This document shows positions 5,363 through 63,889 of a stretch of DNA of 64,000 nucleotides, piece by piece. Below the pieces are notes generated by a model. The model had not been told where the DNA came from. It searched no databases and was given only the letters and a program-made list of their open reading frames with translations. A program made the translations under genes and the position numbers. The DNA lies in sequence record NC_061443.1. One strand, given 5' to 3'. Position 1 is the first letter of the stretch; the number at the start of each line of letters is the position of its first letter.

Positions 5363-5401
5363 GCTAATTTGAATGAGACAGTTCATACAAGGAATACGAT
5401 C

Positions 5402-5614
5402 ATGACCAAGCACTATAACCCACTGCTGGCCTCGAACACTGTAAAGTCAGAGTCGAGTGACACGCAGCAAAGCACAAGTGGCGCTTTCGTAGTTGACAGC
5501 GCTAACGTGTGTCCTAAGTGTAGCTCTGCAACTGTGCCTACACAACTACTCTCTGGCGAGGGTGTTATGTTCTGCACAGGCTGCCGCGTAAGTCTCGCAA
5601 TCCCTTTGAAGTGA
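5402..5614 (+). CDS. small zinc-ribbon protein
   Basis: CPKC...CTGC; AAGGA RBS before ATG 5402. Confidence 0.65.
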   Translation: MTKHYNPLLASNTVKSESSDTQQSTSGAFVVDSANVCPKCSSATVPTQLLSGEGVMFCTGCRVSLAIPLK

Positions 5615-5621
5615 GGTAATT

Positions 5622-7553
5622 ATGGGCGTCCAGGTTGGTCGTCGTCAATTAGGCGGCGCACCCTCGGAGCCTGCAAAGAAGAAAGAAACTTCTCTCGGCG
5701 CAGCCTCCTTACCGCGCGAGATAGGCAAAGCAATCCGCAGTGAGAGTTCGAAGCGTAGCATGAACTTCACCTCTCAATCTGCGGGCGGCGCAGGAATGGC
5801 TGCTGGTAATATGCAAATTGGTTCAGTGCCTCTTGATATCGACTTAGAGCCGATGATGGAAGGTATGGACTATGATGCTGACGACCGGCAGCTATTCAAT
5901 GTCTACCGCGATATGTATCACTTCGATCCAATCTGCGGCTCTTATGTGGACTTGTTCTCAACGCTACCGTTCTCCGATGTGAGTTTCAGTGGTGCGAAGG
6001 ACAGTGTGCTTGAGCCGTACTACGAAGTGAATGAACGTCTGTCACTGACGACCAGTATGCCGAACATCACAACTGATATTCAGGTGACTGGCGCGTTCGT
6101 TGGCTCGATGATCTACAACAAAGACCGTAAAAAGTTTATCGACTTGATGACGCACCGTTACGACAACATCGACGTGACGCCACTGCCGTTCATCAGTCAG
6201 GACCCTATGTTCGAACTGCGCATCCCTCAATACGTGAAGTCTGCCTTTGCTAAAGAAGGTAAACGTATTGACGCGCTGAAAAAAGAGCTGGGCCCTGGGT
6301 TTGTTGATAAGCTCATGAACGACACCACGATGGAGCTTGACCCCATCGGTACAATCTACATCCCGCGTAAAACATTCAGCTTTGGCGAAGGTATCTCGGT
6401 GTTACGCCGTGTGCTGCCTATTTGGCTGATAGAGAAGAACCTCTATCGCGGTACGTTGATTGAATCTGGTCGTCGTCAACGCGGTATCTTACATGCCCAG
6501 TTGGGTGATGGAGATCAGTGGGAACCGTCGCAAGAAGAAATGGACTTTATGACCGACCTTCTTCTGTCTGCGGATAGTGACCCGATTGGATCTATCATCA
6601 CGACCCGACTCGGTGTGAACATCAGTGAGTTCCGTCAAGGCGGTGACTTCTGGAAGATTACGGATATCTGGGACCAGACTGCTCAATTCAAAATGCGAGC
6701 GATGGGTATCAGTGAAGCGTTCCTAAGCGGTGAAGCGAACTATGACTCGGGTGCTGCTGGCCTGACGATTTTCGTTGAAGCGATGCGCGCGTTCCGTGAT
6801 CATCTGACGCGTAAGGTCTACTACGAGAAAGTCTTCCCACTTATCAGTATGATGAACGGCTTAGCTGTTCAGCGTAACGGTAAGATCATCAAAAAGAACA
6901 ACATGATGGAAGGTGGCCTGACCGAAGTAATGTACAAGATGAATGACGGCTCTAAGCTGTTTATTCCGAACGTGCATTGGTCTAAGCAACTCCGTCCTGA
7001 CGTTGATCAGGCGATGATGGAAAACTTACGTGCGATGACTGAACTGGGTGTTCCAGTTCCGTTACGTGCTATCGCTGCTGCGGGCGGGTACAACTTCGAC
7101 CAGATTCTTATGGATCAGGATGAAGACCTCGCAATGCGTCGCAAACTGATGGCCTATCGCAAACGTCAGTCTGAGATTGATGCAGAGTTCGCTCCGCCTG
7201 AGCCTGGTGCAGGTGATGGTGATAGCTTTAGCTCCGTCAGTTCTATGTCTGCTGACCTGCAACGCCGTCGCCGCCACGTAGCGGGTATCGGTCTGTCTTC
7301 TGCTGTGCTTGGTGGTGAGCAACGTAAGCTGCTCAATCGTGACTTCGGTGAACGCTCCGAAATCTTCGAGCTGTCCAAGACAGGTAAGAAGAAGCACGTC
7401 TTCCGTCAGTCTGTCGCTAACTCCAAAGCTAACGACCAGATCTGGAAAGCTGCGAAGAACTATGAAGCCAACAAAACGATGCCACTGGACGATGGTAAAG
7501 TGTCGTTCAAACCAACTCCGGGTGAGCTTCGTGCAATGTCGAGACTCCGTTAA
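5622..7553 (+). CDS. portal protein
   Basis: 643 aa just downstream of terL; YRDMYHFDPICGSYVDL resembles N-terminal helices of large-myovirus portals; GAGG RBS. Confidence 0.7.
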   Translation: MGVQVGRRQLGGAPSEPAKKKETSLGAASLPREIGKAIRSESSKRSMNFTSQSAGGAGMAAGNMQIGSVPLDIDLEPMMEGMDYDADDRQLFNVYRDMYHFDPICGSYVDLFSTLPFSDVSFSGAKDSVLEPYYEVNERLSLTTSMPNITTDIQVTGAFVGSMIYNKDRKKFIDLMTHRYDNIDVTPLPFISQDPMFELRIPQYVKSAFAKEGKRIDALKKELGPGFVDKLMNDTTMELDPIGTIYIPRKTFSFGEGISVLRRVLPIWLIEKNLYRGTLIESGRRQRGILHAQLGDGDQWEPSQEEMDFMTDLLLSADSDPIGSIITTRLGVNISEFRQGGDFWKITDIWDQTAQFKMRAMGISEAFLSGEANYDSGAAGLTIFVEAMRAFRDHLTRKVYYEKVFPLISMMNGLAVQRNGKIIKKNNMMEGGLTEVMYKMNDGSKLFIPNVHWSKQLRPDVDQAMMENLRAMTELGVPVPLRAIAAAGGYNFDQILMDQDEDLAMRRKLMAYRKRQSEIDAEFAPPEPGAGDGDSFSSVSSMSADLQRRRRHVAGIGLSSAVLGGEQRKLLNRDFGERSEIFELSKTGKKKHVFRQSVANSKANDQIWKAAKNYEANKTMPLDDGKVSFKPTPGELRAMSRLR

Positions 7554-7888
7554 TGTACAACGTTGCTACGTGTTCAATTGACGGTACTGAGAAGGTGGTT
7601 GTGTATCGCCACCCTATCTTTACTGACTACGGTCTTGGTCTAAAGATTAACCGTGACGGTGAGATGCCTGTTGTTGAATGTAATATCGTGACAGGCACCA
7701 TTGATGGTCAATCTAAGCTGGAGACCATCAGCGACCATACGGCACCACTCGAAGTTCAAGTGTGGTGTTTTACTGGTATGCTGACTCTGCGGGAATCTGT
7801 AAATATGCAGAGCTTATCACTCGATGCCTTATTCCCAAATAACGGGGGCGTCGTATATTACCGACCAAATCAGGAGAGTACATCGTGA
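7553..7888 (+). CDS. hypothetical protein
   Basis: TAATG coupling to portal stop. Confidence 0.6.
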   Translation: MYNVATCSIDGTEKVVVYRHPIFTDYGLGLKINRDGEMPVVECNIVTGTIDGQSKLETISDHTAPLEVQVWCFTGMLTLRESVNMQSLSLDALFPNNGGVVYYRPNQESTS

Positions 7889-8274
7889 GTGGATTGTTCC
7901 CGCATCGCGTTATCACGCAGAAAGAAGGTTTCGTGTTTATCGTTCAACCTGCGGACGACACTGACCCCGAAGCTGTAGAAGCGGCTCAAGATATTGAAGC
8001 GCTTCTGGTTGAAGCGTGGCCTACTGCACCGTCTGAGCTGTCTGTCAATGACGTGCGTGACCCAGAAGAAGCCGAACTGGTGTTCGCTGATATCATGCAA
8101 CTGCTGGAAGAAGCAGAGCGCGAAGAAGCACATCAGATCGTAATCAGTGGTATCGTTGTTGTCGGCGAACTGGCCGTCGTAACCTGTATGCTGACCGGCG
8201 AAGATCTGGAAAGCGACGATGAAGAAGACGAAGACAATGATTCCGTTGAAGTTGACGAAGAAGAATTCGATTAA
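7885..8274 (+). CDS. acidic hypothetical protein
   Basis: AGGAG RBS, GTG start; D/E-rich C-terminal tail. Confidence 0.7.
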   Translation: MSGLFPHRVITQKEGFVFIVQPADDTDPEAVEAAQDIEALLVEAWPTAPSELSVNDVRDPEEAELVFADIMQLLEEAEREEAHQIVISGIVVVGELAVVTCMLTGEDLESDDEEDEDNDSVEVDEEEFD

Positions 8275-8281
8275 CGTCTGC

Positions 8282-8305
8282 CATGAGGACCTTCGGGTCC
8301 TCATG
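8282..8305 (+). promoter_or_regulatory. perfect 10-bp hairpin with C(UUCG)G loop containing an RBS-like GAGG and the next ATG
   Basis: CATGAGGACC-TTCG-GGTCCTCATG; no U tract follows. Confidence 0.75.
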
Positions 8306-8437
8306 AATCTTACTGATTCGAATCCAGTGTATGCAGCCAAGTTCCTGACGAACAAAACAGAAGACGAAGCACGTTCCCTGTTGGCCGCTCTCAATAATGA
8401 TGAAGTAACATCACTGTACGACTTAATGGTGACGTGA
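8303..8437 (+). CDS. small hypothetical protein (44 aa)
   Basis: MNLTDSNPVYAAKF...; stop overlaps next start. Confidence 0.5.
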   Translation: MNLTDSNPVYAAKFLTNKTEDEARSLLAALNNDEVTSLYDLMVT

Positions 8438-8931
8438 TGGATAATACCGTGGACGAAAGTCCTAATAGCGCAAGGCATCGCATTTTCTTCAAGCAGCCGA
8501 AACGAGTACCTCCCTTCGATACAGCTTTCATTCGTTCTTCTAACAAAGAAGGTTTGAAAGTCCTCCTATCGGCTGCCCCTGAACATTGTCAGATCATTTT
8601 GTTTACGGACGGTCCCGGCATCGCTTATGCCCTGAAACGCCTCTTTAAGCGCAACTTCAAACTCTGTTCGCAAGCTCTACAATTCGACCTTAGGACACTC
8701 ACGTTCACAGGTCAGGTCGTCTATCAGTTCACTCGTGGTGGCGGTGTGTACGAACCTCTAGCGCGTTATTTCTGCGCTGGTGAGAGTTACCTGCATGAGC
8801 TGGCACAGACGACGAAGATTGCCGAGACTGAAACTGACACTATCGACATGTTCTGTTGCGGTCTGGCGTTCCATCGCGTTCTGCTTGAGCGAGGTCGGGG
8901 ACGTTCCATCGTATTTGCGGAGGAACAATGA
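8434..8931 (+). CDS. hypothetical protein
   Basis: overlap-coupled on both sides. Confidence 0.6.
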   Translation: MMDNTVDESPNSARHRIFFKQPKRVPPFDTAFIRSSNKEGLKVLLSAAPEHCQIILFTDGPGIAYALKRLFKRNFKLCSQALQFDLRTLTFTGQVVYQFTRGGGVYEPLARYFCAGESYLHELAQTTKIAETETDTIDMFCCGLAFHRVLLERGRGRSIVFAEEQ

Positions 8932-9956
8932 GTAGATCGTTCGCCTCTATCGGCAAGACGCCTGTAGCTGGTGCAGTACCGAAGATGAAGATCAAGTACG
9001 GCAAGCTGCCTATGCTGCATGTTGTTGACGCATCGAACTGGATGTGCCGTGCTTACTTCGCAACCCAAAAGAACCCGACGTATGCCAAAGACGGAACTCC
9101 GACTTATGGCCTGCGTCAGTTCTTATATATGGCAAAAGACCTGATTGATATTGCGGCGAAAGACCCTAACGGTTCTCACATCGCATTCTGTTTCGATATT
9201 AGCTCTGAGGCTACGTGGCGTTATCGCGCTATGCAGCAATGGGCAGCGGAGCACAAGAAGAAGTACGTTCGTCAGGTGTTTAAAAAGAGTAGCGACTACA
9301 AAGGCAATCGTGATCGTTCTCTGACAAAAGAGCTTGGTGTGCAGATGGCTCTGGCGCGTGACATACTCCAGATGGCTGGCTACTACGTTGGGATTAAAAG
9401 TCCTTACGAGTGCGATGACCTCGTCGGTACGTTGAGCGACCGCTTCAAGCACAAGTACCTGATCAAGCTGTATTCGCGGGATAAAGACTACGTGCAACTT
9501 GTTGACCACAAGAACGTTGAGCTTATCATGCAAGCGCAGTCGAATGCCGCTGAGCGTCGTTTCGATCTTAAATCTGCCAAAGGATTCTTCGGTGTACCTG
9601 CTGACCGCGTTATTGATATGCTCGCTCTTTCTGGAGATAGCGTCGATAACGTTCCTGGGATTCCTGGCATTGGTGATAAGACCGCTGCCGAGTTCATCAA
9701 TCGTTTCGGTGGTGCTATCGAATTACGTGATGCTCTCTTGAGTGGTGAATTGAAATCGAATGCTGGTTGGGCGAAAGCACTGACCATGAAAGCACCTTCA
9801 ATGGATATCGAATTGCAAATGGAGCTTGTAACTATTGACCGTAACGTTCCGGGCTTACCTCGTAAGATCGAAGCGTTCATCCCGGGCCGTCCAGATATAA
9901 AAGCGTTGAAAGCAACTAAGAAACGCCTGGCACTGCCACAACTATTACACGTCTAA
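8928..9956 (+). CDS. 5'-3' exonuclease / flap endonuclease (PolI N-terminal, T4 RNase H-like)
   Basis: VVDAS, YKGNR, ECDDLVG, SRDKDYVQL, LSGDSVDNVPGIPGIGDKTA helix-hairpin-helix. Confidence 0.92.
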   Translation: MSRSFASIGKTPVAGAVPKMKIKYGKLPMLHVVDASNWMCRAYFATQKNPTYAKDGTPTYGLRQFLYMAKDLIDIAAKDPNGSHIAFCFDISSEATWRYRAMQQWAAEHKKKYVRQVFKKSSDYKGNRDRSLTKELGVQMALARDILQMAGYYVGIKSPYECDDLVGTLSDRFKHKYLIKLYSRDKDYVQLVDHKNVELIMQAQSNAAERRFDLKSAKGFFGVPADRVIDMLALSGDSVDNVPGIPGIGDKTAAEFINRFGGAIELRDALLSGELKSNAGWAKALTMKAPSMDIELQMELVTIDRNVPGLPRKIEAFIPGRPDIKALKATKKRLALPQLLHV

Positions 9957-9965
9957 GAGGGTAGT

Positions 9966-10496
9966 ATGACGGACAACATTACCAAGTTGGAGAAGTGGTT
10001 CGACGCAGCAAAGACGGCGTTCCGTATGGGTACTCACAACCCCAACGGAAACATCGCGCTACTGTTGAGCATTTTGGCTCGCCTGAACAAGACAGTTGAC
10101 GAAGCTGCTCCTGGGCCTGTGCGCCAGCAAGCTGAGTTCGAGCGCAATCAGTTCCTTGACGAGCTGGCAGCCGAAGTGAAGATGTACGAACTCATTCGTA
10201 AGCGCTTCAACAACGATCTGTACCCTGGTATTACCGTGGGCGAAGACGTGAAGGTGTACATCGCTCTTATGGCTGACCGCCCGGGTAGTGCTGTAATGGC
10301 AATGACCTTCTTGCACCTTGCGCGATGCTACACGCTCAAGGACATGATCATTAACTTTCTCCCGAATGGCTTCCCTGCTGAGGATGCACTTGGCCTCACT
10401 TGGAGCATACAGAAATCTGATACCGGAAATGCGGTGGACGATATTGATTCTGTAAATAGCCTGTATACTAAGATGTATAACTCTGGAGATAAGTAA
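9966..10496 (+). CDS. hypothetical protein
   Basis: GAGG RBS, 176 aa. Confidence 0.6.
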   Translation: MTDNITKLEKWFDAAKTAFRMGTHNPNGNIALLLSILARLNKTVDEAAPGPVRQQAEFERNQFLDELAAEVKMYELIRKRFNNDLYPGITVGEDVKVYIALMADRPGSAVMAMTFLHLARCYTLKDMIINFLPNGFPAEDALGLTWSIQKSDTGNAVDDIDSVNSLYTKMYNSGDK

Positions 10497-11086
10497 TGGA
10501 TTTATCTGCATTAGGTTACGCGCCGAAGCCGTATCGAGTAATTCCTGTCGAAAAAGAGAATCTCGTTACTGACTTCATTCAAGGTAAGTTCCGCGTTATT
10601 GGCGTTGAGTGTAACGCGCGTGGTGCTTACGGAAATCCGATTCAGAAAAGTATTGCTCGCCGCTTCCCTGAAGTCATGAACCGCGTCAATGCCGTTGACT
10701 ACGAACATGAATTAACTATCGGCAAGACGCATCTGATTCGCGTTCGTACTCAAGCCCGTCGTGATTTGTTCGTCGCTAACATGCACATCACGCGGGGCTT
10801 CGGCCTGGGACTCAATAACACTTCAAGCGAAGGACGTATGGTTAATCGCTTTAGTGAGAAGTTCCTGACGCGGGCGTTTGAACATCTGCTGGAGCAATGT
10901 GACAAAGAGCATATTGCTCTCGACAGGCAGATCGCTATTCAGCGTTTCTATGGTGGACTCGGCGGAGTTTCCTGGGAAGAAGTATGTGTTGTGTTGGATG
11001 ATATTTGTGCCAAGTATCAATTCAACATGTATGCGTATCTACCCAAGAACTACAATACTAACTATGTGCGGGCAGGTGCACAATAA
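10496..11086 (+). CDS. macrodomain protein (Poa1p/DarG-like ADP-ribose hydrolase family)
   Basis: CNARGAYGNPIQKSIARRFP resembles NCxGxMGxGIAxxFxxRFP; C-terminal GGLGGVSWEEV resembles GCGLGGLxWxxV. Confidence 0.65.
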   Translation: MDLSALGYAPKPYRVIPVEKENLVTDFIQGKFRVIGVECNARGAYGNPIQKSIARRFPEVMNRVNAVDYEHELTIGKTHLIRVRTQARRDLFVANMHITRGFGLGLNNTSSEGRMVNRFSEKFLTRAFEHLLEQCDKEHIALDRQIAIQRFYGGLGGVSWEEVCVVLDDICAKYQFNMYAYLPKNYNTNYVRAGAQ

Positions 11087-11098
11087 CTCTGGGGTGTA

Positions 11099-11434
11099 TT
11101 GATGAACACAATACGCGGATTTGATTGGCTCTTTTACGGAGATGGAACCGATAGTGGCCAACACTCAATTGTAAGTCTCGTTGTCGATCAGACAGCAAAA
11201 TCAATACAGGTAGAAGTGAAGCCGGGATGCGCCGTGCCTGTAATTCAAGCGATTCAGGAAAACGAAGTCCTGTACGCTCAGACCGAAGCAGGTCTATATC
11301 GACTTCGCTATAGTTGCTCGTTCCGAACGTTGGATGCTAACGTCTTCCCTCCAAGTAAAACAGAGTTCCGCTTGAAGCTGATCGCCTGTGATTTCTTGGA
11401 CGGTGTTACTACTCACGATAAACTTCTGGACTAG
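11099..11434 (+). CDS. hypothetical protein
   Basis: in-strand ORF in gene-dense run. Confidence 0.55.
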   Translation: MMNTIRGFDWLFYGDGTDSGQHSIVSLVVDQTAKSIQVEVKPGCAVPVIQAIQENEVLYAQTEAGLYRLRYSCSFRTLDANVFPPSKTEFRLKLIACDFLDGVTTHDKLLD

Positions 11435-11439
11435 CCACT

Positions 11440-12192: not shown

Positions 12193-12244
12193 AAAACAGA
12201 TAACGGTAATTTCGACAGGTCAAAACAAATAACGGAATACTATC

Positions 12245-13015
12245 ATGAGCAACGTTGATAAAACAATGCCACAAGGTCGCTGGGAATTTAACGAACCAGT
12301 TGCTGCTGTCTTCGATAACATGCTGCAAAATTCTATCCCCTCATACGAGCGTATGCGTGACCTGACCTATCGTCTGGGTCGTCAGTTCGTAACTCCAGGC
12401 ACAGCCATTGTTGACTTGGGTGCGTCACTTGGTCGTGCTATCGAACCGTTCTGTGCTGAGTTCGGCGAGTACATGTATCTTCACGCGGCAGATCGTCCTG
12501 AGCCAGATCGTGAAACAGGCAACCACTACTGCTGTTATGAAGTAGCGCCTGCGATGCTTGAGCGTCTGCGTCAAAATGAAGTGCTGGTCAATGCCAAAGC
12601 TAAAATCAGTAGCGAGTCACTGGTTGAAGTGGACACTTTCCGATTCGACGAGCAGGTTGAATGCTCTTTGATTCTGTCTGTGTTGACTCTCCAGTTCACA
12701 CCGATTGAACATCGCCAGCACATCCTTGAGAAGGTCTATGACAGTCTTGAGAAAGGTGGCGCGTTCATCCTCGTTGAGAAAGTGCTTGGCGACGATAACT
12801 TCCTCGACCGCCTGTTGGTTGATACCTACTACGGCATGAAAGGCAGCAACGGCTACTCGCAAGAATCTATTGCGACAAAACGTAAAGCGCTCGAAGGCGT
12901 ACTGGTTCCTGTGAAAGCCGCATGGAACGAAGAACTGTTGCGTAAAGCAGGCTTCAACCGTGTTGAGTGTTTCTATCGCGATCTGAACTTCGCTGGATGG
13001 ATTGCAGTTAAGTAA
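12245..13015 (+). CDS. cmoA: carboxy-S-adenosyl-L-methionine synthase-like SAM-dependent protein
   Basis: WEFNEPVAAVFDNMLQNSIPSY N-terminus, VDLGASLG SAM motif, LTLQF, LVEKV, KRKALEGV with the conserved CmoA Arg, FAGWIAVK C-terminus. Confidence 0.85.
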   Translation: MSNVDKTMPQGRWEFNEPVAAVFDNMLQNSIPSYERMRDLTYRLGRQFVTPGTAIVDLGASLGRAIEPFCAEFGEYMYLHAADRPEPDRETGNHYCCYEVAPAMLERLRQNEVLVNAKAKISSESLVEVDTFRFDEQVECSLILSVLTLQFTPIEHRQHILEKVYDSLEKGGAFILVEKVLGDDNFLDRLLVDTYYGMKGSNGYSQESIATKRKALEGVLVPVKAAWNEELLRKAGFNRVECFYRDLNFAGWIAVK

Positions 13016-13022
13016 CAAATGC

Positions 13023-13047
13023 GGGTGGCTTCGGCCGCCCCTTGTTG
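13023..13047 (+). terminator. hairpin with weak U tract (possible leaky terminator)
   Basis: GGGTGGC-TTCG-GCCGCCC-CTTGTTG between cmoA and next gene. Confidence 0.5.
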
Positions 13048-13062
13048 CACAGGAGATTAGCA

Positions 13063-14549: not shown

Positions 14550-14561
14550 CGCGAGGGCACG

Positions 14562-14825
14562 ATGATCAATCGCTTTCAAATGAGAAAAGTTCCTACGCTT
14601 GAAGCGTGTCAGTGGAACGGGGAGAACGTTGAGGAGATGGAGAAGTTTCTCAACGGTCATGGTTATGTCAAAGGACGTTACGTTGAGATCGGCGTGTTGG
14701 ATAAATATCAGAAGCCGACTATCGCTAACGTGTCTGTAGGCAACTACGCAGTTAAGCATGAAGACGGTTCGTTCGATGCAATAACTGCGAGTGAACTGAT
14801 GGACAAATACGTTCTGGCGGATTGA
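14562..14825 (+). CDS. hypothetical phage protein
   Basis: EACQWNGEN...GNYAVK motif common in small phage proteins; GAGG RBS. Confidence 0.65.
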   Translation: MINRFQMRKVPTLEACQWNGENVEEMEKFLNGHGYVKGRYVEIGVLDKYQKPTIANVSVGNYAVKHEDGSFDAITASELMDKYVLAD

Positions 14826-16053: not shown

Positions 16054-16054
16054 A

Positions 16055-16684: not shown

Positions 16685-16693
16685 CTGTAAATA
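16685..16693 (+). promoter_or_regulatory. CTGTAAATA candidate phage promoter motif
   Basis: intergenic, before AAGGAG RBS of dam; exact copies also at 7797, 10450, 32233, 36191, 41464. Confidence 0.55.
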
Positions 16694-27225: not shown

Positions 27226-27231
27226 CGGCCA

Positions 27232-27269
27232 GAGTCTCTCAGTAATTTATGTTTCAACAAGGGAGACTC
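27232..27269 (+). promoter_or_regulatory. hairpin with TAATTT in loop and RBS in 3' arm
   Basis: GAGTCTCTC-agTAATTTatgtttcaacaa-GGGAGACTC, ATG at 27273. Confidence 0.6.
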
Positions 27270-27272
27270 GCC

Positions 27273-27608: not shown

Positions 27609-27650
27609 TCTGTAAAGACAGAGAAAGAGCAACCACAAGAGATACGACTA

Positions 27651-32221: not shown

Positions 32222-32258
32222 GTATCTGAATACTGTAAATATCTGACAGGAGGATCGT

Positions 32259-34856: not shown

Positions 34857-34893
34857 GCGTAATTTCTCCCCAGATCGCCAGAGGAGAAGTATC

Positions 34894-35877
34894 ATGTTAT
34901 TTGCAATAGGGTCCGCCCGGAAACGATTCGATGACCACCAGAACAGCGCCCTTTGTTATGGTGCCGTGTTCGACAGCAATGTAACGAAAGACCAAGCGCT
35001 TTCAGATTGGGCCGGTAACGTTGCTCGTGCTGTAGCTGTCTGCAACACCAAAGCAGGAAACAATCTGACGACAGGACAAGTGCAGGGCCTAAAAGGCAAT
35101 CGCCTGTACGCCGCCACACTGTTTAGTCCAAACGTCAAACGTAGCTATGGTGATGCTAACTATGCTTTGTTTCTGACTGACTTGCGTTTGGTATTAGCAG
35201 CACCGGTCGCGATCAATACGACAGCGCCTGTTGCTATGGGTGAGAATGGTTTCATACTAGCCGAACGCTGTGTAACTTATATGTTTAGAGCTGGAGGTAC
35301 TCCTCAACTCTATAGCACATACAACACGGCTCAGAGCTACAGCAGCCGAGCAGGCGGTGATGTTATCTATACAGTCACCAACGTTAGTTCATTGCACTAC
35401 ACACGTACTGCACGTATGCCTACGACACTGACAGGAGGTGTGACCACATCAGGTTCAGATATAACCGTGACGTCGGCAATCGGTTATGCTTCTGTCGGTA
35501 CTGCTCAATCTACTGGTCAATTTTTCGGTACGATTGATGGAGGTTATCGTTATCAGACTAGCGGCCGTAACGCACAGGGACAGTTCTTCACGAATGACCC
35601 AGTGTTTTACAACGGTAACGGTCTGTACGGCAATGGCGTTCCTCAGAATACAGACCGCAATCTCCGCATATCAATGGCGGTCAGCGGTGCAGATGAAACG
35701 CCCGTCGCTAAGTGGCTTGGTAACGTTATTCAAATAGGCAAAGACTATTTCATGATGCGTTATGAAATAGGCGCAGGCCTTGATGTGGAAAACGTAAACA
35801 CACTTGTGCCTGGAGATAGCGCGAGCTTCACGTACAAAGGAACCAACTTGTCTTATCCTGATCGCGTTCTAATGTAA
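34894..35877 (+). CDS. putative virion protein, displaced paralogue of the 53987-59960 family
   Basis: MLFA...GAVFDS N-terminus like MLFA...LYFDA / LFLFDS; T/G/S/N/Y-rich; GAGGAG RBS. Confidence 0.5.
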   Translation: MLFAIGSARKRFDDHQNSALCYGAVFDSNVTKDQALSDWAGNVARAVAVCNTKAGNNLTTGQVQGLKGNRLYAATLFSPNVKRSYGDANYALFLTDLRLVLAAPVAINTTAPVAMGENGFILAERCVTYMFRAGGTPQLYSTYNTAQSYSSRAGGDVIYTVTNVSSLHYTRTARMPTTLTGGVTTSGSDITVTSAIGYASVGTAQSTGQFFGTIDGGYRYQTSGRNAQGQFFTNDPVFYNGNGLYGNGVPQNTDRNLRISMAVSGADETPVAKWLGNVIQIGKDYFMMRYEIGAGLDVENVNTLVPGDSASFTYKGTNLSYPDRVLM

Positions 35878-40796: not shown

Positions 40797-41469
40797 TCAC
40801 AAAGACCTTATCGCCAAACAATTGCGTGACGGTACGATTGAATTCCTGTCCGGTACAGAAGAACTGGATGCGTTAAGCAGCATCACGTTGCGCTCTGTGT
40901 CTGAACTGGGTCTGGATGTGTTGAACGGTACTTGGTGTTACTCGCCTGAGTACATGTACGAAACACGTATGCCTGTCAGCTATACGTTTGGTCACATGAT
41001 ACCTGTAGAAGTAGGCGGGTACTCTGACTTGCTGCACACTATGATGCAGAAGGCTGCGCAGGAGTTCTACTACGGCCCTATGGGTCTTATTCGCAAGTTC
41101 CTGATTCAACATGAAGCAAGCACGGGCAAGACTGACCTCAAACTACCTCGATCGTGGTCTGTTGTTATTAACGACGATCTAAAGATGCGTGACTTCCTCG
41201 GCGTCATTGAAGGTTATGTGCAGGGTGAAGTGCGTCAGAGCGTTGCGACTGCGGTATATGAGCAATACCACTCAGATATCGAAAACCCAACGCGCCATGT
41301 ACGTCTGGTCTGCAAAGACGATGCCGTGCTGTTACTGCCTATCGACTCCAAAACAGATATCAGTAGCGCGTTTGATATGACGACCATCCTTCGCTTCATT
41401 TCGAACCCTAAAGGTCACGGTCTGAATCAGGAGATTTTCAAAGCGTATCGAGCGCGTGTAAATCTGTAA
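40750..41469 (+). CDS. hypothetical protein
   Basis: GAGG RBS, 239 aa. Confidence 0.6.
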   Translation: MASPLSEMQIGSPLPDHKDLIAKQLRDGTIEFLSGTEELDALSSITLRSVSELGLDVLNGTWCYSPEYMYETRMPVSYTFGHMIPVEVGGYSDLLHTMMQKAAQEFYYGPMGLIRKFLIQHEASTGKTDLKLPRSWSVVINDDLKMRDFLGVIEGYVQGEVRQSVATAVYEQYHSDIENPTRHVRLVCKDDAVLLLPIDSKTDISSAFDMTTILRFISNPKGHGLNQEIFKAYRARVNL

Positions 41470-41527
41470 ATACTGATTGCTAAAGTTATCTGTCTAATCT
41501 AACTATCAACTATGTAAGGAAAGAATC

Positions 41528-44616: not shown

Positions 44617-44632
44617 GATACCATCCTCTTTA

Positions 44633-44666
44633 TTTGACTCGCTTAAATTATCAAGCGAATTTCAAA
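44633..44666 (-). promoter_or_regulatory. hairpin with TAATTT in loop
   Basis: minus strand TTTGAaaTTCGCTT-gaTAATTT-AAGCGAGTCAAA. Confidence 0.55.
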
Positions 44667-45250
44667 ACGAGGTCGTTAATGATAACAGCTTTTGACTGGT
44701 CTGTAGGCGTGGTGCTATTCGCATACACTTTGCCTCCCACCAGCTTCAAGTCTGCATTCGAGTTTTCGTTACCCACAGAGCACACAGTAACGAAGGCCGC
44801 AGGAACATCAGTTACGCCTGTCTGAACGTTGATCGAAGCAGTAGCACCGCCGATGACGATACACCAAGTAGGAGTAGCGTCTTTCGTGAAGTAGCTGGCA
44901 CGATAGTCGGAGAACGTAGCATTCAGACGCATGTTAAACGCAGAGGCTAACATGACGGGCACGTTGTTTGCAGCAAGGGTCATGGCGGCTTTGTTGCCTG
45001 TAACGCCACCAACATAATCCGCAGCCCGTGCTGTAGTCAGAAGCCCCGGACGTTGGTAGATTGCATTAGCTGTCGGGATTTGCGTACCGTCCCCAATCAA
45101 TGTCTGCAACTCTGCTTTAGTTGGCATCGTACCGGTATAGAACAGGATAGCATTCGCAACCGCAGTCATGTTTGTAGGAACAGATGAAGATACCAGAGAG
45201 CTATACGCGTTACGCTGCATCGCATTCGCTGTAGCTGGGAGCATTTTCAT
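44651..45250 (-). CDS. putative virion protein, short paralogue
   Basis: ILFYTGTMPT...CSVGNENSNADLKLVGG. Confidence 0.6.
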   Translation of the reverse strand: MKMLPATANAMQRNAYSSLVSSSVPTNMTAVANAILFYTGTMPTKAELQTLIGDGTQIPTANAIYQRPGLLTTARAADYVGGVTGNKAAMTLAANNVPVMLASAFNMRLNATFSDYRASYFTKDATPTWCIVIGGATASINVQTGVTDVPAAFVTVCSVGNENSNADLKLVGGKVYANSTTPTDQSKAVIINDLVLKFA

Positions 45251-47761: not shown

Positions 47762-47830
47762 ATCATGCCCTTGGTTTAAAGACAGTTCAAATTAATGAGG
47801 TGACGCCCAATCAAGAACGCCACCTTCAGA

Positions 47831-53923: not shown

Positions 53924-53940
53924 TGTGTTATCTCCAGTTG

Positions 53941-53974
53941 ACTCGCTATAAATTACTGAGAATGAATAGCGAGT
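53941..53974 (-). promoter_or_regulatory. 9-bp hairpin with TAATTT in loop, next to RBS
   Basis: minus strand ACTCGCTAT-tcattctcagTAATTT-ATAGCGAGT caactGGAG. Confidence 0.6.
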
Positions 53975-53986
53975 AGGAAGTGGTTG

Positions 53987-55033: not shown

Positions 55034-55041
55034 AATCGCCT

Positions 55042-55992: not shown

Positions 55993-56004
55993 AACCTTTC
56001 CTTA

Positions 56005-57054: not shown

Positions 57055-57065
57055 AGGGTCTCTCC

Positions 57066-58160: not shown

Positions 58161-58235
58161 ATGCGCACCTTTTCGAGTAGAAAATTTTGATATAAGGTAA
58201 AACGGCCCGTACCATTAAGATACAGGCCATAGCTG

Positions 58236-58817
58236 TTACACCAGCAGACGTCCAGCGACAGTAATTGCAACGCCGTTCAGAGTAGTGTCAGCCGTGTCTG
58301 GAGCAATGACACGCATCTGGTCACCAGAAACAAGAATGATCTCTTGGTCCTGATACGCGGCCAGAGGTGCAAACACACCAGTCTTCGAGCCAGCACCGAA
58401 TGATACAGTGCCCAGCTGAATAACAGCCTGAGTTGCTGAATCATACGCGCTGATTTTGAAGACAGATGCGGCAGTAGCAGCAACATCAGCCACAGCCATT
58501 GAGCCGCCGAAGTTCTTAACGATTGCCGTAGTACGCACAGACAGGTAACGTGCAATCTCCTGGCCACCAGCATAACGCTTGAGTACAGACAGACCCACGT
58601 CATATGGGTTTACAGACTGTAACTGATTCACCCACTTGTTGCGCACCTGACTGAACACGTACAGGCCAGGCTGATTAGTGCCGGACACAGCGGTCAAGTT
58701 CCATACACGCCCGTTAGTCGGAGATGCTGGGAAAGTTGGGCCAGAGGAGTTCGGGTCACCCGGAGCACGAACGATTTGAGCCTGCTCGCCTGCGAGCTGT
58801 AGACCATAAGTTAACAT
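58236..58817 (-). CDS. putative virion/fibre-associated protein
   Basis: FPASPTNGRVW attachment-type motif; AAGGAG RBS. Confidence 0.55.
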   Translation of the reverse strand: MLTYGLQLAGEQAQIVRAPGDPNSSGPTFPASPTNGRVWNLTAVSGTNQPGLYVFSQVRNKWVNQLQSVNPYDVGLSVLKRYAGGQEIARYLSVRTTAIVKNFGGSMAVADVAATAASVFKISAYDSATQAVIQLGTVSFGAGSKTGVFAPLAAYQDQEIILVSGDQMRVIAPDTADTTLNGVAITVAGRLLV

Positions 58818-58828
58818 TGTTTATCTCC

Positions 58829-59116
58829 TTAGGCGATTCGCACTTCACCCGTAACAGGGTACGGGAAAGTCACTTTGACTGTATTAACATCCACAATGAT
58901 AACGTCGAGCGGCAGGACCTGATGGAGTTTACCATCTGGCTGCATCGTACACGTAGTCACTGCGACCATACGTCCGAAGTTGTGCGTAATCGTCCATTCA
59001 GCAGCAGGCGTTTCTTGCTTGAAGCTACGCCCCATAGAATAGTTGATCATAAGTTCCTCACAATTCATATGTGTATTGTGGTTCTGGCACGTTAAGTCGT
59101 GCAGTACCGTTTCCAT
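58829..59116 (-). CDS. small W-x-I-x-HN(L/F)G repeat virion protein
   Basis: EWTITHNFG...VKVTF; true start may be MGRSFK. Confidence 0.55.
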   Translation of the reverse strand: METVLHDLTCQNHNTHMNCEELMINYSMGRSFKQETPAAEWTITHNFGRMVAVTTCTMQPDGKLHQVLPLDVIIVDVNTVKVTFPYPVTGEVRIA

Positions 59117-59960
59117 TCATCACAGGAGCTACTTGAGCAAGCTCAGACTCGGCAAGCATTGCTATATGCAGAGTCTTTTTCTCGTCAACGATTGCAGCCA
59201 TTCCCCATGTAGGAACAGAGACACCTGGTGTTTTGCCTGATACAGCGTGATATAGATTCGGCACGCCCCAGTACAGAGTGTAGTAGGTGCCGCCTGAGTT
59301 GTTATAGTTCACCACTCGCGCCACAGCAGAATAAGACATAGCCGCAGCCGAGATAGCGTTACCTGTAACTACTTGGTAGCTATTACTGTTCCACGCGAAG
59401 CCATTGCCTGCGACAACCAGATTAGCATCGAGAGTAGCAGGATAGGTGTACAGGGTCATACTCACACCGTACATCGTATTTCCAACCCACCCATTCAGCA
59501 AACTGTCAGACATGATAGGCAGAGTCTTGTTTATGCCGTGTGTAGCTAAAGCCACAGGCCCTGACGAATCGTTGCCTTTAGTCATCATGCCCATATCATC
59601 AGACATATCTAAAGCGAACTGGCGCTCCATGTAACGATAACTTGGAACGGTCGGAGCATTAACAGGAGCGAGCGATCCTGTCACAATTCCTTTGTTGCTT
59701 GTCCACGTATGGAATATAAAGCGTGTATGTAACCACTGCCTTGTTCCATCAGCACTGATACCGGCAGCCGGGTTAAGAGGTATAGTGCCGTCAGCAGCGA
59801 AGTCCTTAGCGCTCGTAACGGACTTCTCGGCACACAATTTCACGAAGTCTGTCCAAGTAAGAATACTCAGGTCCGGTTTTGGAGTAGACGCATCGAACAG
59901 GAACAGACTTCGCTCTATCATATGCTTTTTGACGCTACGGAAATTTTGTGCGAAAAGCAT
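59058..59960 (-). CDS. putative virion protein, second paralogue family
   Basis: MLFA...SLFLFDAS. Confidence 0.55.
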   Translation of the reverse strand: MLFAQNFRSVKKHMIERSLFLFDASTPKPDLSILTWTDFVKLCAEKSVTSAKDFAADGTIPLNPAAGISADGTRQWLHTRFIFHTWTSNKGIVTGSLAPVNAPTVPSYRYMERQFALDMSDDMGMMTKGNDSSGPVALATHGINKTLPIMSDSLLNGWVGNTMYGVSMTLYTYPATLDANLVVAGNGFAWNSNSYQVVTGNAISAAAMSYSAVARVVNYNNSGGTYYTLYWGVPNLYHAVSGKTPGVSVPTWGMAAIVDEKKTLHIAMLAESELAQVAPVMNGNGTARLNVPEPQYTYEL

Positions 59961-59971
59961 ATGACTACCTC

Positions 59972-60568
59972 TTAGTACAGAATGACTGTACCGGTTTCAG
60001 GGTTTTCGAAAGTGATCGTAAGCTGGCTCGTGCTGTTATGCACAATAGACTTCGGCTGCACTTCTTTCGTTCCCTGATAGATACGCACCGCTGGATTGTA
60101 TCCCAGATTGTGAGTCACTACCCACTCTGCTTCATCAGTGAATGATGCAGTGAACGCAACGGTAGGAGTAGGAAGCCCGCTTTCGATACCAGACAGCAGT
60201 ACAGCAGTACCTGCAACAGGTTCAGGGAACAACACGATAGTCGTGTTCGCATCCTGAGAGTGAATGGAGGAAGGCATAACAACGTCGCCGTTACTGTCGT
60301 AGCACTGAACGATAGGCGTACCTGTGTTCATGTTGTGCGCGATTTCCCAGCGGCTGGATGCAGATGGTTGTGAGTAACGGAACATCGTCATCTGTTGTGT
60401 CAGCGGTACCCAGATAGGCAGGTCAGAGAACTCAACACAGAACATCAGACGCTTGTCCATGAAGATTGCCATGCCCGGCTGAGGGTTAGTTGGCCAGTCA
60501 GTCACTTCTGCAAATTTGAAGTTCTTGATTGAGCCGAACTCTAAGTCTAAAGTCCCAACGACTTTCAT
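59972..60568 (-). CDS. virion protein with two W-x-I-x-HNLG repeats
   Basis: WEIAHNMN, WVVTHNLG; AGGAG RBS. Confidence 0.6.
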   Translation of the reverse strand: MKVVGTLDLEFGSIKNFKFAEVTDWPTNPQPGMAIFMDKRLMFCVEFSDLPIWVPLTQQMTMFRYSQPSASSRWEIAHNMNTGTPIVQCYDSNGDVVMPSSIHSQDANTTIVLFPEPVAGTAVLLSGIESGLPTPTVAFTASFTDEAEWVVTHNLGYNPAVRIYQGTKEVQPKSIVHNSTSQLTITFENPETGTVILY

Positions 60569-60587
60569 AAATCATCTCCTGAAAGGT

Positions 60588-60613
60588 AAAAAGGGCAGGC
60601 AGATGCCCACCCC
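60588..60613 (-). terminator. Rho-independent terminator
   Basis: minus strand GGGTGGGC-ATCT-GCCTGCCC-TTTTT. Confidence 0.8.
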
Positions 60614-60641
60614 TTTATTATGTTACGGCTGTCGTTGTCGC

Positions 60642-62264
60642 TTAGGCTTCGGGCTCAACGTAAGTGTTGGTGCCAGTTACGAATGCGATTGCAACTTTCT
60701 TCGCGGTGGTCAGCTCAACACGCAGGCTGTTCGCGTCGATGAACACAACTTCATCAGGGATGATCTGGTAGCCAGTGTCATCAACAACAGTGACGGTACC
60801 GAACTTGTGTCCAGCATTGTGCGTGAAGGTGTGCGCAGTAGCAGCAACGTCACCACTTGCAGTCTTATCGTACTGATAGACTTTAGCAGCAGAACCGCTT
60901 GAGCCAGCAGCGATTGCGTCGTCAACGTACTTCTTGCTAACAGCAGAAGCATCGGTCAGAGCGCCAACACCAGTCAGGTTGATGTGGTCTACGTCACCAC
61001 CAGTAGCGTCGATGAAGCCACCAGCAGTTTTAACAGCAGCAACGTCAACGATGATTTTGCTATTGTCTACATCCTGTTTCAGGCCAGTGCCCAGAACAGC
61101 AGCAGCAATCTGCTCGTAGCCAACACCACCGTCGGTGATTGCGATACCGTCTACAGAGCGAGACAGGGTAGCGCCGTCCAGTTTAACGCGAGTAGAACCA
61201 GCGTTGTCTTCCAGACCGCCGTTAGCATCCAGTTTAGCAGTCACAGCGTTAGCAGTGATCTGAATACCGGCGCCAACAACTACGTTAACGACGTTGCCAG
61301 CTTTTTCCAGACCGGAGCCTGCGTTGAAGTCAGATGCACCACCGAAGGTAGTCCACTGAGTGCCGTCAAAACGACGATACTCTTTAATGTCTTTAACCCA
61401 GGTAACTGCACCGCCAGCTTCGCTGTCAGTCGGGTCGAAGACGATAACGAACGCAGCGCCGTCATAGCGAACAACCATGTTGTCAGTCAGACCAGTAATA
61501 GAACCGAAGTTCGGATTCACTTGGTCAGCCGCCAGGATGATGTACTGCGCGTCTTTTTCCAGAACAGGGTCCAGAGTACCATCGGTCTGAATGCCGTTGG
61601 AGTCTTTCATCCAGTCGATACCCGCCAGCGCGTTGTCGATATCGATCTTACGAGCAGCGTCGTTCGGGTTAGCTGGAGCAGCCAGGTTAGCAACGGTGTT
61701 ACCGTTAGCATCGAGGTCGCCTGTCAGTTGGCCGTTTGCAGCATTCAGCTTACCGCCCAGAGCCAGTTCGTTCGCGTTAGCTTTGTTGCTGACGGTAGTG
61801 ATCTGAGACTGGAGGTTAGAAGTCGCGCCAGACAGATAGCCCAGTTCAGCAGCAGTAACGGTAGAGCTTTCCAGTGCGGAATCAGCGCCGGCGATAACAA
61901 CTGCGTTCTCAGTCAGACCACTGATTTTGTCTTGCTTGGTAGCAACAACAGTCTCAACGTGTTTCTTAGAAACCGCCGCGTTGTCACCACTTGCAGACTG
62001 GTCAGGACCAGACAGTTCGAGGTCAGCAGTCATTGGCACGGTACCGTCTGCGAGGATAGCACCTTCTACAGAACCACCGCTGCCTCCCAGCTCTTTGATC
62101 ACAGTGCCGTTGAAGTATTTGTACTTGTCTTCGGTGCTGTTGTACCAGATACGTGCTGTCTGGGTTGCAACCAGATCACCAACGATAGGGTCGGCAGCAA
62201 GAACCTCAGGACGGAAGTTCTTAATCTGGGCGCCGAGCATTAAATCAAGATTACCAGTACGCAT
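60642..62264 (-). CDS. abundant fibre/whisker-like virion protein
   Basis: DGTVPMTADL, AVSKKHV/AARKID/AVSKKYVD fibre repeats, AGSGL repeat, C-terminal HTFTHNAG; very strong codon bias; AGGAG RBS and own terminator. Confidence 0.65.
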   Translation of the reverse strand: MRTGNLDLMLGAQIKNFRPEVLAADPIVGDLVATQTARIWYNSTEDKYKYFNGTVIKELGGSGGSVEGAILADGTVPMTADLELSGPDQSASGDNAAVSKKHVETVVATKQDKISGLTENAVVIAGADSALESSTVTAAELGYLSGATSNLQSQITTVSNKANANELALGGKLNAANGQLTGDLDANGNTVANLAAPANPNDAARKIDIDNALAGIDWMKDSNGIQTDGTLDPVLEKDAQYIILAADQVNPNFGSITGLTDNMVVRYDGAAFVIVFDPTDSEAGGAVTWVKDIKEYRRFDGTQWTTFGGASDFNAGSGLEKAGNVVNVVVGAGIQITANAVTAKLDANGGLEDNAGSTRVKLDGATLSRSVDGIAITDGGVGYEQIAAAVLGTGLKQDVDNSKIIVDVAAVKTAGGFIDATGGDVDHINLTGVGALTDASAVSKKYVDDAIAAGSSGSAAKVYQYDKTASGDVAATAHTFTHNAGHKFGTVTVVDDTGYQIIPDEVVFIDANSLRVELTTAKKVAIAFVTGTNTYVEPEA

Positions 62265-62287
62265 TGTAAATCTCCTGTTGCGTGGGA

Positions 62288-63031
62288 TTAGAAGAAAGTA
62301 CCTTCGCAGTCGTCTAGGCTACAGCGTAGCTTTTGATAGGCCGCAATTCGTTCTTCTGTCAGATTGATATACTTATCATCAATGTTGTACTTCACTCTGA
62401 TCGGCACGTCGTACCCATCGAGCAGGCCATGTCGCTTATAAGCATTCAGGCGTAGCACAGGTGAACTGACCTGACCGAATTCCATAATAGTCAGGTCAAT
62501 CTTGTCGGCGTATATGAACGGTCGCTCTCTCTTACACAAGATATAGTCTATCTCATGCAAATTAAAGAGTGTGAAATTCATATAGCCAATTATGAACTCC
62601 GCAATCAGCCTGAATGAATCAAACATGTCAGGCCTAAATTGTTGTGTGAGAATCTGGTCAACATAGGGTCTGACCTCGGTACGCATCTCGTACCAACTCT
62701 CACAGAACAATGCAGGGAAGTCTTCAGGGTGATGGGCCATAAGGCCCAACACGTCTTTCTCTGTATCTGCGAAAGAGCTTAGAATGTCAGCCGCATCTTC
62801 GGATGCCTCGACGCCTCTCCCAGTTGAAATAAAACGACGTTCAATGTCTCTCAACCAAGACTCTGATGCAGACAGGTATTGAAGCAGTGTTTCTCTCGCG
62901 GCAGCCGAAAACTCATGTCTGTTTGAGTCAAGAACCTCACCCAGCATAAAGGCTTTCGCTTTGTAGAAATCACTATAGCGCTCGGCAGTAAATCGTCGAA
63001 ACCCTATGTTATTCCTCAAATAGCCCATCAT
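62288..63031 (-). CDS. hypothetical helical protein
   Basis: 247 aa, coupled to upstream gene. Confidence 0.6.
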   Translation of the reverse strand: MMGYLRNNIGFRRFTAERYSDFYKAKAFMLGEVLDSNRHEFSAAARETLLQYLSASESWLRDIERRFISTGRGVEASEDAADILSSFADTEKDVLGLMAHHPEDFPALFCESWYEMRTEVRPYVDQILTQQFRPDMFDSFRLIAEFIIGYMNFTLFNLHEIDYILCKRERPFIYADKIDLTIMEFGQVSSPVLRLNAYKRHGLLDGYDVPIRVKYNIDDKYINLTEERIAAYQKLRCSLDDCEGTFF

Positions 63032-63543
63032 CGCAATGCCCTCAGATCATTCAACTCCGTGTTGCCTTGAGCATTAGGAGTTGTATATAGAGAACTGGAG
63101 ATGCTCTGCAACCGAAGCCCGAGCTTCTCAAGTTCTTGCTGGTTGCCGCCCAACTTCTCAAGGACTTCCTTCATTAGTTCGACGGAGCCTTGATGGTCAC
63201 GGGATTGCTGAGAGATGATTCGTTCGAAACGCTGCATCGCGCGGAGAACAGAGTTCAATCCCTCTTTCATATCTAAATTATCGACTGGTGCAGAATCAGA
63301 GATTGACTGAATCATTCGCATCATATGCGCCATGTCGGCTTGTAGCTCGTCACTGTCTGGATTACTTGTCGTGCCGTTCTCCAGCTCCGCGTTACGCGCC
63401 TTAACTTGCTCCAGTTCTTCAAGCTGAGGCAGTAGTTTCAACCAAACGTAGGCACCACCTGCGATCAGCAGAACTACAGAGAAGACAGTCGCGTAGTTGG
63501 ACGCAAGCAACTTGTCTAAAATTTCCGCCCACATTATATTCAA
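63028..63543 (-). CDS. membrane-anchored coiled-coil protein
   Basis: N-terminal TM then heptads. Confidence 0.6.
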   Translation of the reverse strand: MNIMWAEILDKLLASNYATVFSVVLLIAGGAYVWLKLLPQLEELEQVKARNAELENGTTSNPDSDELQADMAHMMRMIQSISDSAPVDNLDMKEGLNSVLRAMQRFERIISQQSRDHQGSVELMKEVLEKLGGNQQELEKLGLRLQSISSSLYTTPNAQGNTELNDLRALR

Positions 63544-63824
63544 CCCTTACAGGTGTTATCATTGAGATCGACAATGACCCGTTGAGCACCTGGTTCGTTT
63601 ACGTCAGTGGTTTTGTACGTGTGCGCCATCCTAGGCTTGAACTCCAAGCAGCTTTGTCCGTAACGTCCATCGACTACACAAATGGCGGACAGGCAGCTAA
63701 CATCTTCCTTGAGAATCAAGTTTTCAGGAGATTGGTTAACACTCCTAACGGCAGTGATTACGAAACCCACCACAGCGATAGCAATGACAACCACAATGGC
63801 AATCCTAATTCGCTTGGCTTGCAT
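63540..63824 (-). CDS. small membrane-anchored protein
   Basis: basic N-terminus, TM, Cys-containing C-terminal part; GAGGT RBS. Confidence 0.55.
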   Translation of the reverse strand: MQAKRIRIAIVVVIAIAVVGFVITAVRSVNQSPENLILKEDVSCLSAICVVDGRYGQSCLEFKPRMAHTYKTTDVNEPGAQRVIVDLNDNTCKG

Positions 63825-63889
63825 TTCGGGCTCTACCTCATGGTCCTTTTATCTGAGTGAAATTAGCGAACCGTGCGTTCTGTGAGGAC

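Follow-up and report, generated by a model that had tools for sequence, protein, structure and literature searches.

Late promoters of bacteriophage T4 carry the sequence TATAAATA and are read by gp55 together with gp33 and the gp45 clamp, and several T4 genes (e, soc, 49 and I-TevI) have hairpins that sequester the ribosome-binding site (RBS). Most jumbo phages have no RNA polymerase of their own and are thought to reprogram the host enzyme via phage sigma factors. Here we describe a related arrangement in a stretch of 64,000 nucleotides (the window) that matches bases 1-64000 of Erwinia phage pEa_SNUABM_2 (NC_061443.1) at 100% identity, in which the hexamer TAATTT recurs a short distance ahead of gene starts. 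Our analysis indicates that TAATTT very probably forms the core of phage-specific promoters that serve the morphogenesis and lysis genes; that these sites act as promoters, where and when transcription starts, and which sigma factor reads which motif are inferred here from sequence.

With a genome of 265,442 base pairs (95.1% coding), pEa_SNUABM_2 (genus Alexandravirus) is one of a group of jumbo phages to which the Pseudomonas phages Lu11 and PaBG, NCTB, the Dickeya AD1/JA phages and the Erwinia phages Y3, Yoloswag and Alexandra also belong (PMC7412058). The same paper, on PaBG, describes sigma genes but not promoters. In the literature searched we found neither a description of TAATTT as a promoter in the Lu11/PaBG/Y3/Yoloswag/Alexandra clade nor, for the clade of pEa_SNUABM_2, any promoter class linked to gene function. 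According to a 2026 review, jumbo phages without a polymerase often encode sigma homologues, which 'likely' guide the host polymerase to phage promoters (PMC13282480). Searching the pEa_SNUABM_2 genome with two Pfam models for RNA polymerase beta/beta' (PF00562 and PF00623) returned no match, and the annotation of RNA polymerase sigma factor is carried by one gene, gp242. Transcriptomic data from phage phiR1-37 are not applicable here, since phiR1-37 encodes phiKZ-like polymerases itself (PMC4848604). A search of public sequencing runs turned up none recorded as RNA that contained pEa_SNUABM_2, and the DNA runs that matched shared at most 8% of the sampled words.

Gene starts were taken from the 336 annotated coding sequences (CDS) of the RefSeq record, all of which (336/336) are valid, intact open reading frames (ORFs) in the genome. 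When hexamers were scanned between positions -60 and -20 of these genes, TAATTT ranked first, preceding 27 genes compared with 1.35 expected, and the overlapping CTAATT was found before 23 (1.06 expected). TAATTT and CTAATTT lead all words found ahead of these genes. An earlier, sequence-only reading of the window, which had proposed TAATTT as the core of a T4-like late promoter, took positional enrichment as the evidence that would count, and genome-wide this enrichment lies far above chance. There are 52 copies in the genome, about 30 of them intergenic, and nearly all of the intergenic copies are in sense orientation, 28-53 nucleotides (nt) before a start codon. The density of the hexamer reaches 2.07 per kilobase (kb) in co-directional intergenic DNA versus 0.042 per kb in CDS, a 50-fold difference. 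Such a distribution might follow from the AT richness of intergenic DNA or from the context of TAA stop codons, as AT-only hexamers as a whole reach about half of their expected number in CDS and three of the TAATTT copies overlap a TAA stop. However, the 14 kb of co-directional intergenic DNA contain 29 sense copies and 0 antisense copies, whereas shuffles average 5.8 and never exceed 13; reverse-complement and permuted control hexamers give 0-7 sites versus 27; and orthologous sites in other genera retain the motif. Composition as an explanation is refuted by these controls, and we give it practically no credence.

The distribution of TAATTT within genes separates an action in DNA from an action in RNA. 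Expected counts were obtained by shuffling synonymous codons within each gene. On the antisense strand of CDS, TAATTT occurs 4 times versus 53.5 +/- 6.6 expected, a ratio (0.07) that is the lowest among all 30 A4T2/A2T4 hexamers (median ratio ~0.5), whereas on the sense strand it occurs 17 times versus 24.8 expected (ratio 0.68), placing it among the least depleted hexamers. Depletion restricted to the antisense strand points to a promoter, because a signal acting at the RNA level would be depleted on the sense strand. Furthermore, 9 of the 27 TAATTT sites are found 3-25 nt past a terminator-like hairpin and T-run, which is where transcription must restart. An alternative in which TAATTT acts in RNA, whether by directing processing, by enhancing translation or by binding an mRNA regulator, would accommodate the strand specificity of the motif, its fairly fixed distance from start codons and the location of some copies within RNA hairpins. 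It is at odds with the strand on which the in-gene depletion occurs, with the third of the sites that stand directly behind terminators, and with the hairpin cases described below, in which the motif sits in the part removed by a downstream start, making an RNA-level role highly improbable.

A broader avoidance is also apparent in the coding regions of the whole genome, where all AT-only hexamers are about twofold rarer than synonymous-codon shuffles predict and TATAAT shows about a fourfold deficit on each strand (6 and 6 observed versus 23 and 29 expected). This suggests that promoter-like AT words are generally avoided in coding regions.

The window contains 12 copies of TAATTT versus 21 expected from shuffles. 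Eight of these are intergenic, sense-oriented and placed before RefSeq starts that have a Shine-Dalgarno (SD) sequence, with 30-41 nt between the first T and the start codon and 24-35 nt between the 3' end of the motif and the start, and the remaining four lie inside genes (1365 on the plus strand; 15766, 62559 and 63275 on the minus strand). The eight intergenic copies are those that the sequence-only reading had picked out at 24-35 nt before starts, and each of them was recovered. On the plus strand, the cores precede gp5 (core 5365..5370, start 5402), which is followed by the portal gene gp6; gp16, encoding a cmoA-like methyltransferase (core 12207..12212, start 12245); gp43 (core 27243..27248, start 27273), with the core located in a hairpin loop; and gp58 (core 34860..34865, start 34894), with a terminator-like hairpin 3 nt ahead. 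On the minus strand, they precede gp76 (core 44645..44650, start 44616), with the core at a hairpin apex; gp80 (core 47789..47794, start 47761), where a GC hairpin upstream is terminator-like and the RBS is not occluded; gp88 (core 53950..53955, start 53923); and gp100 (core 63860..63865, start 63824), where no structure is seen in pEa_SNUABM_2 (z +0.9). The motif is kept at the orthologous site of gp5 and gp88 in Y3, Yoloswag and JA29, and of gp16 and gp80 in Y3. The first gene after the gp5 core, gp5 itself (5402-5614, plus strand), is a 70-amino-acid (aa) ORF between the terminase and portal genes, and its 'DNA ligase' annotation seems implausible for this size.

Conservation extends well beyond the window. 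We compared the complete genomes of Y3, Yoloswag, JA29, Lu11 and PaBG, mapping orthologues by tblastn, and found TAATTT at the orthologous upstream site in 24/25, 20/24, 16/21, 4/9 and 3/11 cases, respectively. The intergenic flanks of these conserved sites are largely different in every relative. PaBG, with a GC content of 56%, carries 25 copies of TAATTT genome-wide, and 12 of them stand before an SD sequence, a start codon and a long ORF, compared with 0-5 for control hexamers. In the distant phages PhiXhv-12 and vB_PpuM-Aura, whose sigma is 25% identical, TAATTT is not enriched upstream of genes, and the top upstream word is of the GTAAATA type.

TAATTT is not the only motif of this kind in the genome. 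A second single-block motif, A(A/T)(T/A)CTGTAAATA, precedes 29 genes genome-wide with no -35 partner, mostly replication and nucleotide genes as well as the sigma gene gp242. It is identical to features labelled 'putative middle/late promoter' in the Lu11 record NC_017972 (sequence aaaaCTGTAAATA), and it occurs upstream of the SSB gene adjoining the sigma gene in 37/51 related viral contigs. In the stretch of the Lu11 record examined there is no TAATTT-type promoter feature, the annotated ones being of the CTGTAAATA type, and the TAATTT sites of pEa_SNUABM_2 are without the Lu11-type sequence aaaCTGTAAATA. The TAATTT sites thus resemble the annotated Lu11 elements in being single-block, phage-specific motifs before genes of the same clade, and differ from them in that the Lu11 label covers CTGTAAATA, found here at replication and sigma genes, whereas TAATTT is a separate motif marking another gene class. 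This division is evident when each annotated gene is assigned to its nearest same-strand upstream motif: among structural and lysis genes (portal, head, tail, sheath, tube, baseplate, fibres, PAAR, connector and endolysin), 20 were assigned to TAATTT and 2 to CTGTAAA, while among DNA/RNA-metabolism genes the numbers were 4 and 20.

A third, host-like class consists of AAATAGC located about 18 nt upstream of the extended -10 element TGTGATAyAAT. Its 9 intergenic copies all fall within genome positions 214230-260969 (plus strand), and one of them lies upstream of gp332, ahead of the operon that holds gp335. These host-type promoters at 214-261 kb are probably the early class, and TAATTT, judged from the genes it precedes, appears to behave as the late class among the three.

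The anatomy of the TAATTT sites is simple. Alignment of the 27 sites yielded the consensus W-C-R-C-TAATTT, followed 6-8 nt downstream by a loose (A)GTC, with a -35 region that is not conserved. A logo of 100 sites from four enterobacterial phages shows the same WCRC-TAATTT, with C at position -1 in 57% and G at +12 in 53% of sites; in both logos the information is confined to positions -4..+5 and, weakly, +12, with nothing at -35. Over the 100 sites, the motif is separated from the start codon by 25-54 nt (median 37). The AGCGAGTCAA shared at the hairpin sites corresponds to the loose (A)GTC some 6-8 nt 3' of the motif and probably represents the start-site region. Transcription would begin about 6-8 nt past TAATTT, often at the G of the loose AGTC, producing leaders of ~15-40 nt. 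We propose that WCRC-TAATTT serves as a -10-like core, functioning with no -35 element, that drives late genes across the Lu11/PaBG/Y3/Yoloswag/Alexandra clade, and that a phage sigma-family protein may redirect the host core RNA polymerase to it.

TAATTT matches the -10 elements of the sigma70 family at T-12, A-11 and T-7, according to the TAnnnT logic. These are T1, A2 and T6 of the bacterial sigma70 -10 hexamer (TATAAT, minimally TAnnnT), and the candidate phage sigma factor gp242 keeps the aromatic residues of regions 2.3/2.4; the middle positions of TAATTT differ from those of the bacterial element, a C rather than TGn stands upstream of it, and a -35 partner is lacking. Since key -10 positions are retained and the phage depends on the host polymerase, TAATTT might be a -10 element of host sigma70 itself, possibly assisted by a phage activator or appropriator like T4 MotA/AsiA. 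However, the motif has neither a -35 box nor a TGn extension, its -1 position being C in more than half of the sites, and the evident host-type promoters are of a different make and confined to one part of the genome. In addition, the occurrence of the motif follows a clade in which two sigma-like genes are conserved, and the split in gene classes points to a separate specificity factor. Taken together, we consider recognition by host sigma70 unlikely, and favor the reading of TAATTT as a phage-specific promoter core.

Read in this way, the TAATTT sites share with T4 late promoters a single short AT-only, -10-like block that lacks a -35 element and stands before virion and lysis genes, as well as, by our inference for pEa_SNUABM_2, the combination of the host core polymerase with a phage sigma-family protein. 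As at T4 e, soc, 49 and I-TevI, the promoter can lie within a hairpin whose 3' arm contains the SD sequence, an arrangement seen at about one site in five in pEa_SNUABM_2. The two systems differ in the motif, which is TAATTT and not TATAAATA (the latter occurs only twice in the 265 kb genome, both strands counted), and in the candidate factor of 345 aa, which can be aligned with sigma70 regions 1.2-2. The proposal of a T4-type late promoter core finds good support in the statistics, strand bias, in-gene depletion, conservation and gene class, and does not seem to hold in so far as it implies the gp55/TATAAATA system. The TAATTT system would represent a phage sigma-dependent kind of late promoter that is T4-like in its working and appears to lie outside the gp55/TATAAATA family, which is not surprising in principle.

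Two phage proteins are candidates for reading the single-block motifs. The product of gp242 (genome 198228-199265; 345 aa) matches phrog_17569 'RNAP sigma factor', and the Pfam model Sigma70_r2 matches 5/6 gp242 homologues (best E-value 3.6e-7). As a profile it matches RpoD 376-446 and SigA in the PDB, and as a single sequence it gave no match among PDB sequences. In regions 2.3/2.4, gp242 retains the Tyr, Trp-Trp and Thr residues that are involved in -10 melting. In an AlphaFold model built with 24 homologues (mean pLDDT 73.6), residues 1-234 align to sigma70 108-447, covering regions 1.2-2, with Z of 12-15.5 over 223 residues. Region 4 was not detected in gp242: there was no match to the Pfam r4 model, residues 235-345 are of low confidence in the structural model, and no match spans them. 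A gp55 chain was not among the PDB sequence or fold matches of gp242, and a search of the phage proteome with a sigma hidden Markov model found only gp242 itself and no paralogues. From its sigma70-like region 2 and the -10 character of the motif, we put the chances that gp242 is the protein that reads TAATTT at about even.

The second candidate, gp335 (380 aa; genome 263903-265045, plus strand), is annotated as 'hypothetical' (phrog_19229); its gene lies a short way ahead of the window start, on the other side of the circular junction. The PaBG orthologue of gp335, gp112, was proposed as a second sigma factor (HHpred 97%; PMC7412058). In our structural model, residues 145-247 of gp335 superpose on the sigma2 domain of extracytoplasmic function (ECF) sigma factors, with M. 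tuberculosis SigH as the first match (Z 8.8, root-mean-square deviation 2.8 A, 83 aa), and with further ECF matches to ShbA (8.4), SigE (6.6) and AlgU (6.2). Its C-terminus (LASWLQVSVDAVTGGLETLRGSL) resembles region 4.2 by eye, and its sequence profile had no match in Pfam or the PDB. We regard gp335 as a probable second phage sigma. The CTGT(A/C)AA motif can be likened to the -10 element of ECF sigmaE, TGTCAAA, a comparison on which a literature check returned nothing useful.

The promoters of the two sigma-like genes themselves are informative. While gp242 is preceded only by CTGTAAATA, the gp332-336 operon has a host-type extended -10 promoter plus CTGTAAATA, and together these arrangements suggest a sigma cascade. 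In such a cascade, host sigma70 would transcribe the early genes, gp335 would direct the middle, CTGTAAATA-preceded genes including gp242, and gp242 would in turn direct the late, TAATTT-preceded genes. We tentatively put forward, as a possibility that falls short of an even chance, a three-step programme with two phage sigma factors, in which the ECF-like gp335 family acts on CTGTAAATA and the sigma70-like gp242 family, seemingly lacking region 4, acts on TAATTT, both promoter classes being -10-only and hairpin gates being added at selected genes. Bacillus phage SPO1 (gp28 for middle, gp33/34 for late genes) offers a parallel, in that it has no polymerase of its own and runs early, middle and late classes on the host core polymerase through successive phage sigmas, as pEa_SNUABM_2 would according to its promoter wiring; SPO1 promoters comprise -35 and -10 elements, whereas both phage classes in pEa_SNUABM_2 are single blocks. 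One may speculate that -10-only promoters would suit DNA with possibly modified cytosines.

As there are two sigma-like proteins and two single-block motifs, and none of our tests ties a given protein to a given motif, the assignments could also be reversed, with gp335 reading TAATTT and gp242 reading CTGTAAATA. In that case gp242, which stands behind CTGTAAATA only, would drive its own class with no earlier source. The gp335 operon has a host-type promoter. Moreover, the residues with which sigma70 handles A-11 and the -12 base are retained in gp242, which fits TAnnnT. The reversed pairing seems doubtful to us in view of this wiring, and we proceed with gp242 as the candidate reader of TAATTT.

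We next consider translation. The sequence-only reading had placed TAATTT 'often' in hairpins covering the RBS, naming hairpins at 27232-27269, 44633-44666 and 53941-53974 and a TTCTCC/GGAGAA pairing at 34864-34888, all of which are present. At gp43, the hairpin (27227..27272, plus strand) has a folding free energy (dG) of -16.9 kcal/mol (z -2.9; 1/200 shuffles as stable). Its 5' arm, GGC..GAGTCTCTC (27227-27240), faces a 3' arm, GGGAGACTC-GCC (27261-27272), that contains the GGGAG SD sequence, and the loop contains both TAATTT and the predicted start site near 27255. The same architecture recurs with other arm sequences in Y3 (GGCCTCTTGT/ACAGGAGGCC, z -2.4) and in Yoloswag. The cognate arm/SD duplex of gp43 (-20 kcal/mol) ranks 1 of 27, and the gp43 orthologues found in viral contigs come from three close relatives, too few for a formal covariation count.

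Three further window sites show related structures. At gp76, a long interrupted hairpin (44625..44672, minus strand; dG -18.8 kcal/mol, z -4.0, 0/200 shuffles) pairs CCUC with the GAGG SD at its base, and in Y3 different arm sequences give the orthologue the same fold (z -3.3), again with a paired SD. At gp88 (53932..53979, minus strand; dG -13.4 kcal/mol, z -2.6), a hairpin ACUCGCUAU/AUAGCGAGU forms around TAATTT with an outer UUCC/GGAG (SD) pairing, and this hairpin is not conserved in the Y3, Yoloswag and JA29 orthologues. A weak hairpin at gp58 (34857..34897, plus strand; z -1.9, 7/200 shuffles) pairs UUUCUCC, which overlaps the end of TAATTT, with the GGAGAA SD, reaching z -2.8 in longer context; no gp58 orthologues were found outside Alexandravirus among the relatives compared. 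For gp100, strong SD-occluding hairpins are found in the orthologues of Yoloswag (z -6.1) and JA29 (z -1.9).

Outside the window, the leader of gp249 (206379-206431, plus strand) is conserved in four genera, with TAATTT in a 5' arm whose pairing partner is the SD sequence (z -2.5 to -5.4). It encloses a conserved inner hairpin (GTTGGCAAGTAGTGCTGAC), and the SD-occluding arrangement was found in all three other genera. Since gp249 lies in the early-gene block, this element could represent a regulated leader or else a small RNA.

Across the genome, 5/27 sites (gp43, gp58, gp76, gp88 and gp249) combine z <= -2 with an SD sequence paired upstream of the predicted start, and four of these lie in the window. 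The word 'often' therefore fits the window (4/8 sites) and not the class, of which 5/27 are significantly stable. Tests of cognate versus non-cognate arm/SD duplexes were marginal (p 0.046, 0.16, 0.008 and 0.022) and driven by a few genes, and inverted repeats running from flank to flank around the motif were likewise marginal. At gp43, gp76 and gp249 (as well as gp58 and gp88 here, and gp100 in relatives), a hairpin whose 3' arm holds the SD sequence is predicted to carry the promoter in its 5' arm or loop. Read-through mRNA would be translationally silent at such genes, and only mRNA started at TAATTT would be translated. At gp43 in particular, the 5' arm lies upstream of the predicted start, such that read-through mRNAs derived from CTGTAAATA promoters would be closed and TAATTT-initiated ones open.

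Several observations weigh against the picture drawn here of a late promoter class read by gp242 and gated by hairpins. The 'late' label rests on sparse annotation, and the genes of one operon are not independent of each other. Some TAATTT genes are non-structural, namely gp16 (cmoA-like), gp122 (followed by nudix and thymidylate kinase genes), gp229, gp249 and gp250, and the major head gene is not directly preceded by TAATTT, the closest copy standing two genes upstream. Both gp242 and gp335 are present in every relative examined, the distant PhiXhv-12 and vB_PpuM-Aura included, with gp335 conserved in Alexandravirus, Lu11 and PaBG as well as in these two; because the two genes co-occur throughout, their presence or absence cannot assign a motif to a sigma. 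The fold match of gp335 is of middling strength for a helical domain. The pairing of TAATTT with gp242, rather than with gp335 or with host sigma70 and an accessory factor, is drawn from promoter wiring and -10 logic only. Finally, occlusion of the RBS is absent as a class-wide property, with a mean SD pairing in read-through RNA of 0.53 in TAATTT genes versus 0.50-0.55 in controls.

The clade to which pEa_SNUABM_2 belongs includes Erwinia, Dickeya and Pseudomonas phages that are used or proposed for the biocontrol of plant disease. For these phages, the TAATTT and CTGTAAATA motifs provide a testable map of ~55 transcription units, together with a likely sigma cascade and natural promoter-in-hairpin gates of translation. 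The motifs also help to annotate operons and the timing of expression in roughly 50 sequenced relatives, and offer compact orthogonal promoter and sigma parts.

Copies of the CTGTAAATA motif are also present in the window, all on the plus strand and 25-72 nt ahead of the genes that they precede. Four of them stand before gp24 (16685-16691), gp44 (27610-27616), gp50 (32233-32239) and gp71 (41464-41470), and three are located within the ends of genes, before gp13 (10450), gp36 (23000) and gp61 (36752). At one gene the motif differs between relatives: upstream of gp16 (12207-12245, plus strand), TAATTT is found here and in Y3, and CTGTAAA in the Yoloswag and PaBG orthologues, so that the promoter class of this gene appears, from the motifs present, to have switched between relatives.

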